A model generated the notes under the pieces. The model was not told the DNA's origin and did not search any database. It saw only the letters and a program-made list of their open reading frames with translations. From Hormiphora californensis (taxonomy: Eukaryota; Animalia; Ctenophora): a stretch of DNA of 64,000 bases. This document shows, piece after piece, positions 479 to 56,633 of the stretch. The translations under genes were made by a program, and so were the position numbers. The stretch spans positions 372,001-436,000 of the forward strand of contig CM035350.1 in the NCBI GenBank assembly GCA_020137815.1, given 5' to 3'. How positions within the stretch are numbered: the first letter of the stretch is position 1; each line of letters opens with the position of its first letter.

Positions 479-1185
479 CCACATACTTGTATCATTGGTG
501 GTCGAAGGGATGTATTTGAGCAGCAAAGAAAAAGAGAAGGAGTATCATCAACAAACACACGCTAATGGACAACTGCTTCCTAGATCCACAATATATCTAC
601 CCTCTCCTTCCCCGATACCCTGTTTTTGCAGATCGTATCACATGTTTAAACGGCTCTAATTAGATAACTACAAAAGATAGAAACAATTCCAAAGTTGAAC
701 GGCAAATTTGGACGATTCTCTGTCCACTCAAGAAGTTTCCATAGCCCCAACCCTTCATATAAGGGCTGTGTTCAGGTCCTCCTTTTTGTCACTTTAAAAC
801 GTCTTTTTTGACTGTTTTGGTCATAACTCGTGATTGGATTGTCAGAACATCACCCAAATAGACAGACACTTTGGATATGCATTAGTTAACTTAAAACCGG
901 TTTCAAGATGATCCAAGCACTCTATCCGTGGGCACGACCGCGCACCAATAGTGGTCCTGACTATTATACATTTAGAGAAAACAAATCTGAAAAAGATTTG
1001 TAAAGCAGCTCAGATATCAGGTAATGACTCTCACGCTATTATAGTTCCATCGTACACACGAGAGTGACCTATTCTCGATCAGGTGGCGTGGATTCACTAA
1101 TTTTATTCTAAAGATCACGTGGATTCATTCCTTTTTTTTGTGAAAAGGCGTCTTATCAGTCATGTAGACAATGTATAATTGTTAT

Positions 1186-1960
1186 TTTACCAAAACCAAT
1201 TGAAATTAGTAGGCCGGAAAGGTTGCCTCACGATTTGAGCTACCTTAGGCACCGTAACTTTCACGGGGTATAGACAGGTTACAGATGCTTCGGTTATCTT
1301 CAAAACGGAATGTACCAGTGCCAAAGGTAGCTCAAATCGTAAGGCAACCTTTCCTGCCTACTAATTTCAATTAGTTTTGGTATAATTTGCATCATTTTTG
1401 GGATTTTTTATCCATGTAGATTTAGTAGAATAGGTACAGAGAGGTTAGAGTCGCGAAATTGAGAAATTTTCATTTTTGACGTCATTTTGACGTCATAAAA
1501 CGACGTCACGACGTTGTAACGTCAAAATTATGACGTCATATTATCGGGCCCACCTAGATGAAGATACTGACCAAGTTTGAGATCGATTGGATGAGATTTG
1601 AGTCCGCTATAGCGAAAAAACCCATAGCGTCATATCTGTTTTTAAACAGTCATAATACTTTAGATGCGTTTTAAGACCCTTATACGTCTGGTTTTCAAAA
1701 TTAACTATACAGTTTCTGAAAGTTCAGACAATTCTCTTTCCATGATATAGTCTTCGATTTTCGATTAGAATCCGTCTTCAGGGTGTAAATTGAGCTCAAA
1801 GAATTTTGGTCAGAGTCTGAAAAATGACGACTTTAAGACGTTCTGTAGGACGTTCCTGGCGATGGAAAGGGACCCCACTACAACTAATGCACACACATTC
1901 AGTAGATCTACCAGCTGTGAAAAGATGAAGTCTCTATCTCTTTTCGTTTGGCGTCACATT
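1186..1960. mobile_element. Dispersed non-autonomous repeat with a ~200-bp hairpin at one end
   Basis: Inverted arms at 1186-1250 and 1318-1386. A second copy lies at ~56805-57205, and the internal part recurs inverted at 40880-41560. Confidence 0.7.
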
Positions 1961-2089
1961 CACTTATAAGCGTTTCTCCTACGGCGTCGCGTGTGCATGC
2001 CTGTACACACTGAATTTAGGGCAAATGGGACCTGTCTGTAACTTCGGTTCCAGATGAGATAGAGACTTGAAATTTTGAACTTGAGTAAA

Positions 2090-5000
2090 AGACCCCAAGC
2101 CGGGTATACATTCCAAATTTCAAGCCAAACGGATGAAAGGGAGCCACGCTATAGCGTTCTGAAATCTGGATTTTCAGCCAAACACCCATTAAACGTATAA
2201 CTGCGTTTCTGGCGGCGCTTTTTGAAGGGGGGGGGAATGGCAACCTTTGCGCTTGCCAGCGCAGTGATAGACAATGGTCAATGTATATCTATAGTGCTAA
2301 TTAATTACCTTAATTATTATCCCCCAGGCTAGGATTATCGTGGAAGAGGAGCAGCAGGACAATGAAGCACAACAGCAGGTTTGTACAAATGAGGCACACT
2401 ACGACACTACGACAATTTGTTACCTCGGATACAGTTACAACATTACTTGTTCGTCACGTTGTATTTCGTTTCACTTTTGCTTGTCTCAGACACCAAAAAG
2501 GGCTATTTTCCTCAATAAAATGCAACCCAAATCTGTTTCTAGTTCTCATTTCCATCACACATGACCTCCCAGATACCACTGAACTGTCTTTCGAGCCTGG
2601 CCTGGTCTCATTACTAAATTACAGCTACATTTTTGTCCAATACTAGCTCTTCCTCTCACTAAAATGCAACTTAAATCCGCCTCAAATACCAATATACGAG
2701 AACATATGATCTCTCAGTCACCAGTGAGCAGTCTCCCCGGCAACGCACAGTCCAATAGTTAGTTTAGGGCAGCAATTTTGGCCAAAATCGACCAAAATTT
2801 TGGAATTTTGCATTTAATTAAATTTGGGAAACTTTGTACTTTGCCATCGCGTGTTTGATAAAGGAGCACTAACAAGTCACAGAGCAGAATTCTATTCATT
2901 ACTCGTTCGTCACGTTGTATTTCTCAGACACCAAAAAGGGCTATTTTCCTCAATAAAATGCAACTCAAAGCTGTCTCTAGTTCTCATTTCCATCACACAT
3001 GACCTCCCAGATACCACTGAACTGTCTCTCGAGCCTAGCCTGGTCTCATTACTAAATTACAGCTACATTTTTGTCCAATATTAACCCCCGCCCCACCCCC
3101 ACCCACCCAAAGACCCCAAGCCGGGTATACATTCCAAATTTCAAGCCAAACGGATGAAAGGGAGCCACGCTATAGCGTTCTGAAATCTGGATTTTCAGCC
3201 AAACACCCATTAAACGTATAACTGCGTTTCTGGCGGCGCTTTTTGAAGGGGGGGGGAATGGCAACCTTTGCGCTTGCCAGCGCAGTGATAGACAATGGTC
3301 AATGTTATCTATAGTGCTAATTATTACCTTAATTATTATCCCCCAGGCTAGGATTATCGTGGAAGAGGAGCAGCAGGACAATGAAGCACAACAGCAGGTT
3401 TGTACAAATGAGGCACACTACGACACTACGACAATTTGTTACCTCGGATACAGTTACAACATTACTTGTTCGTCACGTTGTATTTCGTTTCACTTTTGCT
3501 TGTCTCAGACACCAAAAAGGGCTATTTTCCTCAATAAAATGCAACCCAAATCTGTTTCTAGTTCTCATTTCCATCACACATGACCTCCCAGATACCACTG
3601 AACCTGTCTTTCGAGCGCTGGCCTGGTCTCATTACTAAATTACAGCTACATTTTTGTCCATACTAGCTCTTCCTCTCCACTAAAATGCAACTTAAATCCC
3701 CTCAAATCCAATATACGAGAACATATGATCTCTCAGTCACCAGTGAGCAGTCTCCCCGGCAACGCACAGTCCAATAGTAGTTTAGGCAGCAATTTTGGCC
3801 AAATCGACCAAAATTTTGGAATTTTGCATTTAATAATAATTTGGGAAACTTTGTACTTTGCCATCGCGTTTTGATAAAGGAGCACTAACAAGTCACAGAG
3901 CAGATTCTATTCATTACTTCATCGTTCCGTCTACGTTGTATTTCTCAGACACCAAAAGGGCTATTTTCCTCAATAAAATGCAACTCAAAGCTGTCTCTAG
4001 TTCTCATTTCCATCACACATGACCTCCCAGATACCACTGAACTGTCTCTCGAGCCTAGCCTGGTCTCATTACTAAATTACAGCTACATTTTTGTCCAATA
4101 TTAACCCCCGCCCCACCCCCACCCACCCAAAGACCCCAAGCCGGGTATACATTCCAAATTTCAAGCCAACGGATGAAAGGGAGCCACGCTATAGCGTTCT
4201 GAAATCTGGATTTTCAGCCAAACACCCATTAAACGTATAACTGCGTTTCTGGCGGCGCTTTTTGAAGGGGGGGGGGAATGGCAACCTTTGCGCTTGCCAG
4301 CGCAGTGATAGACAATGGTCAATGTATATCTATAGTGCTAATAATTACCTTAATTATTCATCCCCAGGCTAAATTATCGGATTCGTGGAAGAGGAGCAGC
4401 AGGACAATGAAGCACAACAGCAGGTTTGTACAAATGAGGCACACTACGACACTACGACAATTTGTTACCTCGGATCTCAGTTACAACCTTACTTGTTCGT
4501 CACGGTTTGTAGTTTCGTTCACTTTTGCTTTCTCAGACACCAAAAAGGGCTATTTCCTCAATAAAATGCAACCCAAATCTGTTTCTAGTTCTATTTCCTC
4601 ATTCCTAACACAGACCTCCAGATACCACTGAACTGTCTTTCGAGCCTGGCCTGGTCTCATACTAAATTAACAGCTACATTTTTGTCCAATACTAGCTCTT
4701 CTCTCACTAAAATGCACTTAAATCCGCCTCAAATACCAATATACGAGAACATTGATCTCTGAGTCACCAGTGAGCAGTTCTCCCCGGCACGCACAGTCCA
4801 ATAGTTAGTTTAGGGCAGCAATTTTGGCCAAAATCGACCAAAATTTTGGTGGAATTTTTGCATTTAATTAAATTTGGGAAACTTGTACTTTGCCATCGCG
4901 GGTGTTTGAATAAAGAGCACTAACACGTCACAGAGCAGAATTCTATTCTTACTCGTTCGTCACGTTGTATTTCCAGACACCAAAAAGGGTATTTGCCTCA

Positions 5001-50626: not shown

Positions 50627-51240
50627 GACACCTAGTGCGTGCGAGATCGAGCTCGCACATAGGTGTCCGCTCCGCCCCCTAAAAAAGGGTCGTGTCTTTC
50701 AAGCCAAATTGCACGTGATCCACTGGACCGATTTGCATCCGGTTTGTCGCAAAAGACTACAAATTGGTCCTAGTTTACTGGAAAATACCCGAGAAGTTTG
50801 TCTGTCAACAGGAAGTGGGTCAAAATTGACACTGAAGTCAAATCTATAATCTGGCTTCCGAGCCTTTTTGCACCACTCCCAGACGGTGTAGAATGAATCT
50901 GAGGGTATCAGAAGATAGGTTGAACTCTTGTGAGTACTGGAAAATACCCGGCATTAATAGCTGATGCTAATTGCATCAACATATATCTCCCAATATCTTC
51001 TAAATCGCATGGGCGTAGTGCAGAAACTCTTGGAAGCCAGATTATAGGTTTGACTTCAGTATCAATTTTGACCCACTTCCTGTTGACAGACAAACTTCTC
51101 GGGTATTTTCCAGTATATTAGGATTATTTGTAGTCTTTTGCGACAAACCGGATGCAAATCGGTCCAGTGGATCGCGTGCAACATCCCTTGAAAGAAACGA
51201 CCCTTTTTGAGGCGGAGCAGACACCTGTGTGTGAGCTCTA
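50627..51240. repeat. Imperfect fold-back element
   Basis: Inverted arms 50650-50850 and 51040-51240. Confidence 0.75.
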
Positions 51241-51627
51241 ATTCAATTAGTTTTTGACTTAATACATATATATATATATATAACAACAACAACAACAACA
51301 AAATGGATTTATATACCGACTAAATAGACAAGTACTCTCGATTGGTTCGAAGAGCAATTGCCATTCATAGCGGTTCTTTCATCCTATCTTGACATATTGG
51401 TTGACAAAAGGTCGTAAATGGTAACTCATACTGGTGACTTATAACTGACATATATAGTAGACTTTATTAACTCTCAACACTTGGTGACTGTGGGTGACAA
51501 GTATAATCAGAAAAAATAATAACAAAAATGATAAACTGAATAGTATCTTAGATTATAAAGAATTATGTGACAGCAGCAGGGGTGACCGTGTGAGAACGGG
51601 GACTAATGAATAACCGAAAAGAACTTA

Positions 51628-54600
51628 TTAAAGACTGATGTCGAAAACCAAATAAGGTCTTTCAGAGAAGGTAACAGTAGCATCGAACAGGTAGGTCTTC
51701 AGGCGAATACGGAAGGAGTCCTCTGAAGGTGCGTCTCTGAGGTTCTCCGGTAGGTTGTTCCAGACATGGGGGAGATATTGGGATATTCTCCTTTTTCCCA
51801 GTTTGCTCACTTTCACATTTCCAGAAAGTAGCTTTAACTTGTAATGGTCTACTTTACAGCTCTGACGAGTAGACTTCTGCACTGCAGTATTTTCATCATG
51901 TTCCACTAGATCCTGAAGGTACTGAGGGGCACTTCCATAATAGATCTTGTACCCTAGTAAACAGATTTTGAAAAATATCCTCTTTTCAATCGTAAGGATA
52001 TGGGAATCACGGTAGAAGGGGTCCAGATCAACTTTCCTCTCTCTGACTCCATGGATGTATCTTATTACTTGATTCATTAGTCCTTTCAGGGGCTTGATGG
52101 TAGAGGCCGGTAGGTTGAAATACAGGGCATTTGCATTGCAATAGTCCACTTTGGATATGACCAGCTGGGAGGCAAGCATCAGACGTAGAGGTTTATCAAT
52201 GAATCGGCGGATCTGCCAGAGGTTCCTCATAGTAACTCCAGCATTCCTCTTGACCATGGAGATTTGACGTTTCATATCCATTTGTTCATCAAGATAGACA
52301 CCAAGGGTCTTTCCCGATTTTCCAGACATGTCCATGGGGGAAATGATGTTCCCATTTAGCTCAAGAGTCAGGTCACTCTCCTCACGTACACTATCCATCT
52401 TCTTCTTCTTCCCCAGGATAAGAAACTCAGTTTTATCCTCATTAACCATCAGTCTGTTTTCAATCATCCAAGTTCTTACCTCCTCCAAACATTTCTCAAT
52501 AGTCTCCTTTGAACCTGTCCAGCCTTCCACAGGGCAGAATCCGATGTATATAGTGCTATCGTCTGCATAAAGTCGTATTGTGAGTCCATACTTCTTTACA
52601 ATAGGTTCTAGTGGTTCCACATACAGGGCAAAGAGGACAGGACCAAGGAGAGAGCCTTGGGGTACTCCATATTTGAGAAAGAGCCTAGGTGAGAGGGCAT
52701 CTCCAATTTTAACTTTATAGCTCCTGTCATTGAGATAGCAGCTAGTGAACCATTCGAGTACCGTTGATCCAATTCCAAACCGCTTCTCCAGTCTCTTCAA
52801 AAGCTGAGGGTGGTCAATGGTATCAAATGCAGCCGAAAGATCAATTTGAACGACTGCCACAACATTTCCTCTGTCCATTTCCCCAAGGACATCATCAACG
52901 ACTCGCACCATATGTGTCTCACAACTGTGGTTGGGGCGAAAACCAGATTGGCATTCACCTCGCAGGTCGTTTTTCTCCAAATGTTCATTTAGCTGTACAT
53001 TAACAGCTTTCTCCGCTAGCTTGGACAGAACACTGAGATTCGAGACTGGTCTGTAGTTCGCAAGAGAGTCCACGTCTCCAGATGTATTCTTGATTGTGGG
53101 CCTCACAATAGCCTCTTTCAGTCCTGACGGGAATACACCACTCTGCAAAGAAGTGTTCACGATTTTGGTAAGCACCGGAAGTAGAGTAGGGAGAAGCTGC
53201 TTCAGCAGAGAGGTCGGGATAGGGTCCAAGTCACAGAACTTATCCGGCAGGCTCTTTACAAGGCTTGCCACTTCATCTTCAGTCATAAGACTGAACGTCT
53301 CAAATCTTTCTGTCTCTCCTTCAAAAGCACCGGACTCCGTTGATTTCTTTTCACCCAACTCTTCAATCTTGTCACCAATCTTCTTCTGTAGTTTATCAAT
53401 CTTGGACTTGAAAAACTCTCCAAACTCAGTTGCTAGTTTCTCCGGGTTGACCATATCTGGGAGGATAACATTGGAGTTACCCAGTAGCTTGCTCAGTTGT
53501 TGGTTGAGCCTCTTTTGATCGCGTCCACAGAGTTCAATATTTCTTCTGGTGTATTCTGACCGTTTTCTGACCTCCATCTTGTTGAAAGCTGACCTTAGTT
53601 CCACATACATGGCCTTCAGCTGCGGCTTCTCCTTTGTCTTGTCCTTTCTCCACTTTCTCTCAGCACGCCGCTTCTTCCTCCGGAGGGTTAGCAGCTCTTC
53701 ATCCATCCATGGTGTATACTTCTCTTTCTTCCTTCTCTTCTTCATAGGACAGTGCTTATCAACCAGGAATAGCAACGCTTCATATAACTTCTCAACAAGG
53801 CTATCAACATCCTCTTCGTCAGCAGGTGAGGTAAACAGTCCACTGGCTTTTAGATCCTCATTAAAACTCTCCACATCCACCTTCGAGAAGTCCCGATACC
53901 AAATTGTCTCCGGCCGTTTCCTCTTACTGATCCTCGCAGTCAGTTGTAGGTCCACTGTAACAAGATGGTGGTCTGAAGTAGTTCCCTCCTCCAAGATCCT
54001 AACTGGTTCAAGACAATCTGCTACTGTAGCATCCATCAGGGCTAGGTCTAGAGTACCTCCATGTCTGTGTGTCGATATCAAGGGAACCATCTGTTTGAAG
54101 TCAAACTCCTCGATCATCTCCTGTAGCTTTTTTGGATAAAATTCATCAGGCCTTTCCATGTGAAAGTTGAAGTCTCCCATGATTAATGGTGTCCCGACTT
54201 TACAGTTTAGTTCCTCAAGGTATCCCTTGAATTCATCCAGGAAGTGGCTCTGGGTATGAGGTGCCTTCTTCGAGTACGGTGGCCTATAGATGTTTACTAG
54301 CCGGTACATCTCACTAGCATTTCCAATAGTAGTCTCTGTACACTCAAAGGTCTTGAAACACTTGGTAGGTCCAGATTTAACACCCAGGTCCGCTCTGTAT
54401 ACCATTGCTACTCCACCACCAATCCTCTGCTTCCTCGGTGCCGAGTGGATTTCCCATCCTCTTTCCTTTATCTCATGATGTTTAGCATTGTCACCTTTCC
54501 TCAGGTAGGTCTCTTGAAGAAGACAAATATCAACAAGTTGGTCCTCAAGGTGTTCCAGTACACCAGCAGTCTTATTGACAAGGGAGTTGCAGTTCAATGT

Positions 54601-54672
54601 TCCAACTCTTAGTGAGTTCTCCTTCTTTCCAAGAAGTCTCGTGCCTTCCGACTGTACTCGTTTTTTAACATC
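51628..54672 (-). CDS. LINE ORF2: APE endonuclease plus reverse transcriptase (no initiator AUG)
   Basis: LQET, YRPP, GDFN and SDH (APE); NYRPVSNL, QSGFR, DLSAAFDTIDH, GVPQGSLLGP and YADD (RT). The frame stays open up to a TGA at ~54673. Confidence 0.97.
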   Translation of the reverse strand, partial: DVKKRVQSEGTRLLGKKENSLRVGTLNCNSLVNKTAGVLEHLEDQLVDICLLQETYLRKGDNAKHHEIKERGWEIHSAPRKQRIGGGVAMVYRADLGVKSGPTKCFKTFECTETTIGNASEMYRLVNIYRPPYSKKAPHTQSHFLDEFKGYLEELNCKVGTPLIMGDFNFHMERPDEFYPKKLQEMIEEFDFKQMVPLISTHRHGGTLDLALMDATVADCLEPVRILEEGTTSDHHLVTVDLQLTARISKRKRPETIWYRDFSKVDVESFNEDLKASGLFTSPADEEDVDSLVEKLYEALLFLVDKHCPMKKRRKKEKYTPWMDEELLTLRRKKRRAERKWRKDKTKEKPQLKAMYVELRSAFNKMEVRKRSEYTRRNIELCGRDQKRLNQQLSKLLGNSNVILPDMVNPEKLATEFGEFFKSKIDKLQKKIGDKIEELGEKKSTESGAFEGETERFETFSLMTEDEVASLVKSLPDKFCDLDPIPTSLLKQLLPTLLPVLTKIVNTSLQSGVFPSGLKEAIVRPTIKNTSGDVDSLANYRPVSNLSVLSKLAEKAVNVQLNEHLEKNDLRGECQSGFRPNHSCETHMVRVVDDVLGEMDRGNVVAVVQIDLSAAFDTIDHPQLLKRLEKRFGIGSTVLEWFTSCYLNDRSYKVKIGDALSPRLFLKYGVPQGSLLGPVLFALYVEPLEPIVKKYGLTIRLYADDSTIYIGFCPVEGWTGSKETIEKCLEEVRTWMIENRLMVNEDKTEFLILGKKKKMDSVREESDLTLELNGNIISPMDMSGKSGKTLGVYLDEQMDMKRQISMVKRNAGVTMRNLWQIRRFIDKPLRLMLASQLVISKVDYCNANALYFNLPASTIKPLKGLMNQVIRYIHGVRERKVDLDPFYRDSHILTIEKRIFFKICLLGYKIYYGSAPQYLQDLVEHDENTAVQKSTRQSCKVDHYKLKLLSGNVKVSKLGKRRISQYLPHVWNNLPENLRDAPSEDSFRIRLKTYLFDATVTFSERPYLVFDISL

Positions 54673-55823
54673 TCAGCTCCGGCTGTTCTATTCATCAATC
54701 TCTCCTTCTCCATGATAAAGAAGGGACACTGGAAACTGTTCGCTGTGTGGGTGGTGGCATTGAGCTGATCGATCTTGCTTCGGCTACTCTTGCAGTTTGC
54801 ACAGCATCTGGAGTCAACTTTTCTATCCTTCTTCACTTGACAATCCTTGAAACGATGATTTCCAGCACAGTAGGTACAAACTGGATCACCGCTGTCTCTC
54901 CTGGGGCACATCACTGAGTCTGACTTGTGACCATAGCGTTGACACTTGAAACATTGAACGATATGAAATCGATCCTTCACAATGTGGATTTGAAAATCAA
55001 GGTTAATTCTGTCATTCCTTTTGCGAACAATCTCCCGTATCTTTTTTGACATCTGGACAACTGCATATCGATCCTCCTTATGAAGAAAGATGACTTTCAG
55101 TTCCTCTTGGTGACATTCAACCTGCTCTTTGATTTCCTCATTTTTCCTCAGTATTTCACTGTACACTTCCTCGGCAGTGGTGATTTCTCCAGCAATGTCT
55201 GAGATTGTAACTTTGGGATTGAGCTTCTTGGTGGTGAGAGTGGCTGTTGAAGTATCAAATTCAGATTTCAGCAGCTCTTCAGCTTTGTCTCGTTGAGACT
55301 TGTCCTTGAAAACTAGATTGGTATCCTCTTCATTCGAGCTGGTTCCATCAACTGGGATTGACTGCAGAGTCTTTCGTACCTTCGCCTTTACAACTTTCCA
55401 CTTTTCCAGCCCAACTTTCTCAAGTTTGAGGGTGTGCTTCTGTGGTGTCTTCTTAGGGCTGGGGTTGAGCAACTTTCCAGTATCATCAGTCTTCTCCTTG
55501 CCGTTTATCGCCTTCTGTATCATGTCTGGTATGTTTGCAAAACACTCCCGCATAGCCTCAAGTTCCTTGAGAACCTGTTCAGACCTATCCTGTCCCACTA
55601 CTGCTCCTTCTTCTGACTTGGTCTTCACAAGGTCTTCCTGCTGCTTGTCCATCATTCTCAATAGGTTAATAGCAAAATTCCATAGAATATCTTTAGTGAT
55701 ACCCGCTGGGGGAGCTTTTTTACCTTGCAAGATTGGGTCCATATCCACAGGTAGATTATCTTTCATAAACGTGTCCAACTCTTTCCTCGTCCATAACTTT
55801 AGCGGGATTGCCTTCAATGTCAT
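54609..55823 (-). CDS. LINE ORF1, gag-like protein with three CCHC-type zinc knuckles
   Basis: CFKCQRYGH..C, CTYCAGNH..C and CANC..H..C; ATG at 55823. Confidence 0.93.
   Translation of the reverse strand: MTLKAIPLKLWTRKELDTFMKDNLPVDMDPILQGKKAPPAGITKDILWNFAINLLRMMDKQQEDLVKTKSEEGAVVGQDRSEQVLKELEAMRECFANIPDMIQKAINGKEKTDDTGKLLNPSPKKTPQKHTLKLEKVGLEKWKVVKAKVRKTLQSIPVDGTSSNEEDTNLVFKDKSQRDKAEELLKSEFDTSTATLTTKKLNPKVTISDIAGEITTAEEVYSEILRKNEEIKEQVECHQEELKVIFLHKEDRYAVVQMSKKIREIVRKRNDRINLDFQIHIVKDRFHIVQCFKCQRYGHKSDSVMCPRRDSGDPVCTYCAGNHRFKDCQVKKDRKVDSRCCANCKSSRSKIDQLNATTHTANSFQCPFFIMEKERLMNRTAGAEMLKNEYSRKARDFLERRRTH
54660..54666 (-). promoter_or_regulatory. Putative -1 ribosomal frameshift heptamer A-AAA-AAC
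   Basis: In the correct ORF1 phase (TTA AAA AAC), within the ORF1/ORF2 overlap. Confidence 0.7.
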
Positions 55824-56036
55824 CACTAGCTACGATCTGCAGGATAAATTCAAGGCCTCGCCTAACGACAACTAGTGTCAATCCTCCGAGTAAGATCCGG
55901 TCTTCTCTTGTCTTAGGCCTTGTCTTTCTCACACAGAAACTGTTACCAGTCTCTGATAAACCCAGAAAAGACAAAACAAAAAAGTATAAAGAGCCGAATA
56001 TATACCAAAGAACTTAGCGAATTGGAAAAACGAAAC

Positions 56037-56071
56037 CTCAAATTAATTTGTTTAAAGTAGTGTTGAAAAGT
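56037..56071 (-). other. Retro-integrated ctenophore spliced-leader sequence (3' 35 nt)
   Basis: Minus strand reads ACTTTTCAACACTACTTTAAACAAATTAATTTGAG, matching the cydippid ctenophore SL as recalled from the literature (not searched). Confidence 0.85.
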
Positions 56072-56343
56072 ATATACATATATATATAAATTACCTGTTT
56101 TTTCGATGTTAATACATATTAACAAAGTTAGCCAAGTTAATGCCCCTCCCCCACGTGAGTTCTTCATCAGATGCAGAACGCCCTAAACGGTAGTCAGAAG
56201 CAAACTTCTCAAATTGTGAGTAATCATTAGAATTGAAAATCAAGGTTTTATCGGAAATTTAAGACATAGATACAGGTCATAATGATACATGGAAAGCAAC
56301 TATTACACTCTAATAAATTCTTTTTTATAAGCTATAGCAATTA

Positions 56344-56633
56344 GGGGAAACTCTAACTGAATGGCATCCCATTAATGGGGTCCCATCAACAGTAAAACTC
56401 TAACTGATAATGGACCACAGTGATGGTTCTTTCTCTGTATTCTCTTTGTAGGCAGTACATCTATGTACTGCCTACAGAGAGAATACAGAGAAAGAACTAT
56501 AGGGTATGCCCGGGCACGGGCGCGCACACAGAGAGAATACAGAGAAAGAACCATCACTGTGGTCCATTATCAGTTAGAGTTTTACTGTTGATGGGATTTC
56601 ATTAATGGGATGTCATTCAGTTAGAGTTTCCCC
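56344..56633. mobile_element. PIF/Harbinger-type palindromic MITE
   Basis: TTA|ggggaaactctaac ... gttagagtttcccc|TTA (3-bp TTA duplication). Confidence 0.9.

Follow-up and report, generated by a model that had tools for sequence, protein, structure and literature searches.

How a long interspersed nuclear element (LINE) regains a complete, capped 5′ end after each round of copying is a long-standing question, to which internal promoters and 5′ ribozymes are the known answers. An intact LINE of about 4.8 kb in the ctenophore Hormiphora californensis poses this question in a particular form. The element occupies the minus strand at 56088-51262, target duplications included, of a 64,000-nucleotide (nt) stretch of genomic DNA (assembly GCA_020137815.1, contig CM035350.1, positions 372,001 to 436,000; hereafter the window), and it opens with 35 nt that a preliminary description of the locus had taken for the 3′ part of the host's trans-spliced leader (SL). 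How did a host leader come to head a LINE, and what keeps it there? The head of the element almost certainly derives from LINE RNA that had been trans-spliced. The best explanation as a whole, in which such RNA was copied back into DNA, its leader perhaps being renewed by re-splicing at the integrated AG, is one that we consider very probable.

The identification of the 35-mer, on which the preliminary description had staked its reading, was borne out, since the sequence equals the last 35 nt of the published H. californensis leader (PMC8527503). The same study reported 718 genomic leader sequences and found the leader on 56% of Iso-Seq reads (PMC8527503). When the H. californensis genome (110.7 Mb, 45 contigs) was searched with up to three mismatches allowed, the 35-mer occurred 608 times compared with 0 for a reversed control, so the match is not due to chance; the SL RNA genes described below have the identical sequence in their exon. 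Contigs from environmental RNA libraries cover these 35 nt to a depth of up to ~35,000. In these libraries the reverse complement of AGTTTCAA extends the leader upstream of 56071, and its downstream side, past 56037, joins many different sequences. From the extension, the leader is therefore 43 nt long and starts with AGTTTC; the extra G of the published 44-mer is probably derived from the cap or an adapter.

We then asked how the leader is attached to other members of the LINE family. A genome search with the 5′ untranslated region (UTR) alone returned 13 candidates, all of which were scored: 12 were 5′-complete and one was truncated. Every one of the 12 copies that keep the 5′ UTR carries the SL at an identical junction, GAG/GTTTCG (the slash marks the end of the leader), with leader lengths of 43, 42 (six copies), 41, 39 (two copies), 36 and 35 nt. 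The flanks of all 13 copies are mutually unrelated, several being TTG/TTTG-rich and resembling the tail of the element, and no flank sequence was co-copied at the heads of the 12 (no 5′ transduction). Leaders of variable truncation, joined at one GTTTCG junction in unrelated surroundings, are the pattern that the preliminary description had named as support for its reading. The same search of 13 scored candidates contained no SL-less 5′-complete copy and no copy with a longer 5′ end, either of which that description would have counted against itself. As the leader stands on every 5′-complete copy in the assembly, new copies come from leader-headed copies. A search with the whole element gave 932 candidates, of which 40 were scored; these included eight full-length copies, four with internal deletions and at least 25 that were 5′-truncated, their starts scattered from 678 to 4716 and their common 3′ end at ~4869. 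Copies are 96-100% identical and the first open reading frame (ORF1) is intact in 10 of the 12; judged from these sequences, the family is young.

A further copy was found outside the reference genome, in a Joint Genome Institute (JGI) metagenome contig (Ga0233438_10058863; locus L080). It is 95% identical to all twelve reference copies; its ORF1 is intact, its leader is 35 nt long and its flank differs, and the GAG/GTTTCG junction is the same, hence constant across 5% divergence. Its flank matches the reference at 83% (contig 2, 1078738-1078839), where the reference is without a copy. The contig's source may be a population that has diverged or a sister species; alternatively, the flank may have been matched to a paralogue.

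The SL RNA genes themselves are few, numbering ~16 in the genome. At 15 loci the leader is followed directly by GTAAGCTGAG, then by a hairpin, a CUUUUGG Sm-like site and a terminal hairpin; in one further copy, within an array on chromosome 13, T replaces the C of GTTTCAAAC. The array is tandem, with a period of ~745 bp, on contig 13 at 3.18-3.195 Mb (loci L074 and L075), and some of its members have 1-2-nt exon deletions. Outside the array, SL genes (L071/L072, L076 and L077 among them) form divergent pairs, head to head and separated by 530-610 bp, on contigs 5, 9 and 11; contig 12 has one gene on its own. Upstream, SL genes have in common two CACGTGAC boxes, a CC(A/T)6GG box (CCATATTTGG), CACCTGCAC and, directly before +1, CCATCAGC. 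Their junction reads GAG/GTAAGC, whereas that of the window reads GAG/GTTTCG and runs on into the LINE. When checked for the SL-gene intron (GTAAGC), the Sm-like site and the upstream promoter boxes, the window locus had none of them. Its flanks are unrelated to SL genes, which disposes of the possibility, raised in the preliminary description, that the LINE had merely inserted into such a gene.

What, then, are the remaining genomic leaders? An unselected sample, the first 30 leader sites on contig 1, included no SL gene (0/30). Leader lengths in the sample were 43 (eight sites), 42 (eight), 41 (seven), 40, 39 (two), 37, 36 and 35 nt (two), and at 16 of the 30 sites an intronless ORF of at least 200 amino acids (aa) starts no more than 120 nt from the leader. 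Most of the sampled leaders stand in front of retroelement ORFs that are intronless and unrelated to one another. Downstream of the leader, at least 30 unrelated sequence groups can be distinguished, some of which encode RVT_1 domains, PHD fingers, or AlkB-like plus GDSL domains. On the evidence of these sequences, most leader loci of this genome are heads of retrocopies. An Rfam search of 20 leader-headed loci at the gathering threshold gave no match.

The layout of the LINE in the window, re-read from the DNA, agrees with the preliminary description in all its parts, namely the 35-mer at 56071-56037 on the minus strand, a 213-nt UTR, ORF1, ORF2 and a TTG tail:

56074..56088, minus strand: 5′ copy of the target-site duplication, TATATATATATGTAT, an exact 15-nt match to 51276-51262
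56037..56071, minus strand: DNA copy of the SL, the last 35 of 43 nt, the first 8 nt being absent
55824..56036, minus strand: 5′ UTR, 213 nt, opening with GTTTCG right after the terminal AG of the leader
54609..55823, minus strand: ORF1 of 404 aa; Cys/His knuckle-like motifs lie close to the C-terminus
54660..54666, minus strand: A_AAA_AAC heptamer in the ORF1 frame, inside the ORF1/ORF2 overlap (read from the sequence)
51628..54672, minus strand: ORF2, in the -1 frame, open from 54672, with its stop at 51628
about 54594-53959, minus strand: apurinic/apyrimidinic (AP)-type endonuclease in ORF2 (PF03372, PF14529)
about 53064-52399, minus strand: reverse transcriptase in ORF2 (PF00078)
51302..51627, minus strand: 3′ UTR, 326 nt, the shared end of the 5′-truncated copies (query position ~4869)
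51284..51301, minus strand: (TTG)6 tail
51262..51276, minus strand: 3′ copy of the target-site duplication, TATATATATATGTAT

The leader sits inside the 15-nt duplication, with two extra nucleotides (AT) between the 5′ duplication copy and the leader; the repeats at 56088-56074 and 51276-51262 thus enclose it, as the preliminary description had stated. The duplicated TATATATATATGTAT is a low-complexity TA sequence and, taken alone, weak evidence. In ORF2, the AP-type endonuclease domain is N-terminal (Exo_endo_phos PF03372, aa 2-210, E 1.4e-9) and is followed by the reverse transcriptase (RVT_1 PF00078, aa 512-733, E 4.5e-31). Relatives of ORF2 include one at 94%, another at 72% and many at 43-46% with the same domains, and the nearest solved reverse transcriptases are R2 proteins. 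ORF1 has no Pfam match; in the ESM Atlas, the clusters nearest to it consist of hypothetical proteins of eukaryotes, zf-CCHC or PRE_C2HC being present in some, and it looks like the knuckle-type ORF1 proteins of LINEs. Given its ORF2 with endonuclease and reverse transcriptase, target duplication, simple-repeat tail and 5′-truncated copies, the element is classed as a non-LTR (long terminal repeat) retrotransposon, a LINE of the AP endonuclease type. Its finer placement goes no further than the Jockey/CR1/I group, which is where the PF14529 match, the microsatellite tail and an ORF1 of the knuckle type point. ORF2 is without an ATG of its own in the overlap with the end of ORF1 (54660-54672, minus strand), and the A_AAA_AAC heptamer is kept in all copies with an intact ORF1 as well as in the environmental copy; this heptamer is a likely -1 frameshift site for ORF2, as predicted from its sequence. 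Rfam, applied to window positions 51000-56400 at E values up to 1, returned no ribozyme and no other known RNA family.

The origin of the head can now be considered. The host's 43-nt SL was joined to family RNA by trans-splicing at a fixed site, leader AG/GTTTCG, and target-primed reverse transcription of this RNA almost to the cap then gave insertions headed by 35-43 nt of leader. The preliminary description had proposed this sequence of events, and the 12 of 12 fixed junctions and variable leader lengths support it. The leader could alternatively have been acquired when the reverse transcriptase switched templates from the 5′ end of LINE RNA onto SL RNA, as in U6/L1 chimeras. Such chimeras are known for L1, and SL RNA is generally abundant; on the other hand, the join lies exactly at the end of the leader exon and is identical in all copies, and the LINE copies contain no part of the SL RNA intron (GTAAGC...), which makes a template switch extremely improbable. 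Still harder to credit is site-specific insertion of the LINE into an SL RNA gene, the behavior of CRE/SLACS and NeSL elements. Apart from the mere presence of leader sequence, nothing favors such an insertion, whereas the flanks of the 13 copies are unrelated to one another and to SL genes, the leader is enclosed by the target duplication, and the endonuclease is of the AP type rather than restriction-like. Because the SL intron and promoter boxes are absent at the window locus, we treat both of these origins as excluded there, and trans-splicing of the LINE RNA is the origin that we carry forward.

Trans-splicing explains how a leader is gained; how it is kept from round to round is a separate matter. 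We propose that transcription enters a leader-headed copy from upstream, whether as read-through or from any promoter nearby, and that such RNA would be trans-spliced anew at the AG that ends the integrated leader. Re-splicing of this kind would put a fresh, capped leader in place of the old one and the flank, joined at an unchanged nucleotide, and its consequences would be a fixed junction, no tandem leaders and no carried flank. The data fit these expectations, in that there is no SL-less master copy, no 5′ transduction and no tandem leader; direct leader-leader pairs within 30 nt number 0 in the whole genome. Read from the sequence, the only AG of the leader beyond position 2 is the one at its end, which is therefore the first AG after any branch point inside the leader. 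Furthermore, two other families contain copies whose junctions are offset by exactly one YAG unit (Y, pyrimidine), either CAG or TTTCAG: L010 lacks the hexamer present in its relative L020, and L002 differs from its relatives L013, L017 and L026 by CAG. These shifts look like alternative acceptor use on transcripts containing the leader region. The position of the SL-gene promoter also counts for re-splicing, as it lies upstream of the leader and is not carried by the LINE. That upstream transcription and re-splicing at the terminal AG maintain the leader is a proposition to which we would give close to, but not quite, an even chance. We advance slightly more tentatively the broader idea of the integrated leader as a trans-splice cassette that renews itself, by which this LINE and dozens of other retroelement families in this genome would need no promoter and would have their exact 5′ end rebuilt in each cycle.

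Several observations weigh against renewal by re-splicing. The leader ends in GAG, a weak acceptor, G at -3 being the least favored 3′ splice-site base. Directly after the leader, a canonical TTTCAG stands in 39 heads across the genome (e.g., L006, L008 and L020), against ~0.15 expected by chance, yet it has been retained; this retention fits either a first-AG rule or an absence of re-splicing. The family tree can be read either way: truncated leaders occur only on terminal twigs, which counts against re-splicing, but their position beside copies with full-length leaders, and the fact that the two copies with 39-nt leaders are not sisters, speak for renewal. The tree would also fit a history in which only full-leader copies were ever sources, and its relation to leader length is compatible with both renewal and inheritance. 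Variable columns number 0 of 35 in the leader versus 13 of 213 in the UTR, a difference that is not significant (P ~0.12). Finally, among the contigs from environmental RNA runs that map to the window, none joins the leader to the UTR of this LINE (depth 0 at 55762-55948), and the LINE body reaches a depth of 2-6 in environmental libraries that may contain DNA. As a source of the heads in which TTTCAG follows the SL, a longer leader variant ending in TTTCAG was considered and rejected, as no SL gene has such an exon.

Two other accounts of how the leader persists dispense with repeated trans-splicing. The leader might act as a portable initiator or promoter, captured once by trans-splicing and thereafter, perhaps together with the UTR, setting the start of RNA polymerase II transcription at leader position 1 or close to it; progeny would then inherit it without new trans-splicing, and shorter leaders would reflect incomplete reverse transcription. 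Such an initiator would likewise leave the junction fixed and tandem leaders and 5′ transduction absent, it accommodates the fact that no progeny were detected for truncated-leader copies, and it is at ease with the 39 heads that retain an unused TTTCAG. Precedents count in its favor: internal promoters of the jockey/I type initiate at +1, and in Ascaris the SL sequence is a promoter element that lies within the gene. In dinoflagellates, too, retroposed DinoSL has been proposed as a promoter (PMC6050394). However, the promoter elements of the SL genes (the CACGTGAC pair, CC(A/T)6GG, CACCTGCAC and CCATCAGC) are upstream and absent from the LINE, the leader would need to serve as promoter for all of the at least 30 unrelated families, and the junction shifts by one YAG unit in two families indicate repeated splicing. 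We accordingly think a portable initiator unlikely, though still a serious rival. Even less plausible is a single capture followed by passive inheritance, with the family promoter located in the 213-nt UTR and the leader carried as neutral baggage. In its favor, one junction and one leader variant are common to all copies, and the leader is not significantly more conserved than the UTR. Nevertheless, a promoter downstream of the junction, with its start site as before the capture, would yield leaderless transcripts, while all 12 reference copies and the 95% identical environmental lineage keep the leader; moreover, the same head recurs in at least 30 unrelated groups.

Other leader-headed loci have features of their own. 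At three of them (L012, L015 and L027, at about position 1500), two leader-headed units are joined 5′ to 5′ into a palindrome with the leaders at its center, and in L012 and L027 the leader of one arm has an internal deletion; such leader-centered palindromes would agree with snap-back synthesis at the RNA's 5′ end. The palindrome units open with CUGAUGA or CUGAAGA...GAAAC, which is similar to a hammerhead core, and have no match in Rfam. L003, L022 and L025 (after position 1535) represent a short non-coding repeat family, headed by the leader and sharing ~130-190 nt downstream of it; L003 is flanked by a 10-nt duplication, TAGATACTAG. From their sequences, these three look like leader-carrying retrocopies of a small RNA or of a type similar to short interspersed nuclear elements. 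In L056 and L068, the first ORF starts 57 nt after the leader and encodes an AlkB-like 2-oxoglutarate-Fe(II) (2OG-Fe(II)) oxygenase and a GDSL-type esterase domain. Otherwise different families (L009, L047, L049, L050, L054, L066 and L078) share, within the first 40 nt after the leader, the pattern G(T)GG..CC...CCTCAA...YAG a few nucleotides before an ATG.

The host surroundings of the insert were also inspected. Contigs of an oligo-dT RNA library from a marine sample cover both flanks, 50900-51273 and 56323-56500, at ~91% identity; the flanks may therefore be transcribed, conserved host sequence. ORFs at 44-51 kb of the window lie mostly on the plus strand, and Pfam searches of these surroundings yielded nothing usable for a host gene.

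Among known systems, CRE1/2, SLACS, CZAR and NeSL-1 insert into SL RNA genes by means of a restriction-like endonuclease. The Hormiphora LINE resembles them in being a retroelement physically associated with SL sequence. It differs in its AP endonuclease, its dispersed copies and a leader that is part of the element's own copied RNA; it has neither a restriction-like endonuclease nor a fixed insertion site, the 13 flanks all being different. A closer parallel is found in the dinoflagellates, whose "recycled" complementary DNAs and retrogenes contain DNA-encoded DinoSL relicts (Slamovits & Keeling 2008; reviewed in PMC6050394). In both cases the trans-spliced leader is reverse-transcribed with the messenger RNA and then encoded at the 5′ end of the genomic retrocopy, and here, as in other SL-tagged retrocopies, an intronless, retro-inserted unit has the DNA-encoded leader as its immediate 5′ end. 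For dinoflagellates, too, it is a matter of debate whether the integrated leader contributes to the following round of expression. In contrast to the dinoflagellate host genes, the copies described here belong to a LINE that is autonomous and to many further retroelement families, and the host is an animal whose leader measures 43 nt; tandem relict leaders, seen in dinoflagellates, are absent within 30 nt in the Hormiphora genome.

In Hydra, ~30% of Iso-Seq reads from transposable elements carry an SL (PMC12220107), and transposon RNAs there likewise use the host's SL trans-splicing machinery. The available part of the Hydra account concerns RNA reads and mentions no LINE family whose full-length copies all have the leader fixed in their DNA at the 5′ end, as is the case in Hormiphora. 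In R2 and L1Tc, the 5′ end of a LINE is set by ribozymes similar to that of hepatitis delta virus (HDV), which process co-transcripts (PMC3185411, PMC4035085). As in those elements, the 5′ end here may come from the processing of a longer host transcript, with a promoter of the element's own not strictly required. Unlike them, the Hormiphora LINE has no ribozyme by the Rfam search above, and processing would consist of spliceosomal SL addition, which also provides a cap. A literature search retrieved no report of leader-headed LINE families in ctenophores.

Collectively, our findings point to a third route to a complete 5′ end, found in an animal, that would employ the host SL machinery and whose result is written into the DNA of every full-length copy. 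They also correct the interpretation of the ~700 "leader loci" that the H. californensis genome paper describes. Its 718 leader sequences, like its shared first exons (PMC8527503), are the same genomic leader copies, treated there as SL loci; by our analysis, only ~16 are SL RNA genes, and the remainder of those sampled are heads of retrocopies. As most leader loci would thus be retroelement heads, the apparent clusters of genes sharing a first exon are explained. The leader can serve as a tag for full-length retrocopies, and leader heads make promoter-independent retrotransposition directly testable with long-read RNA data.

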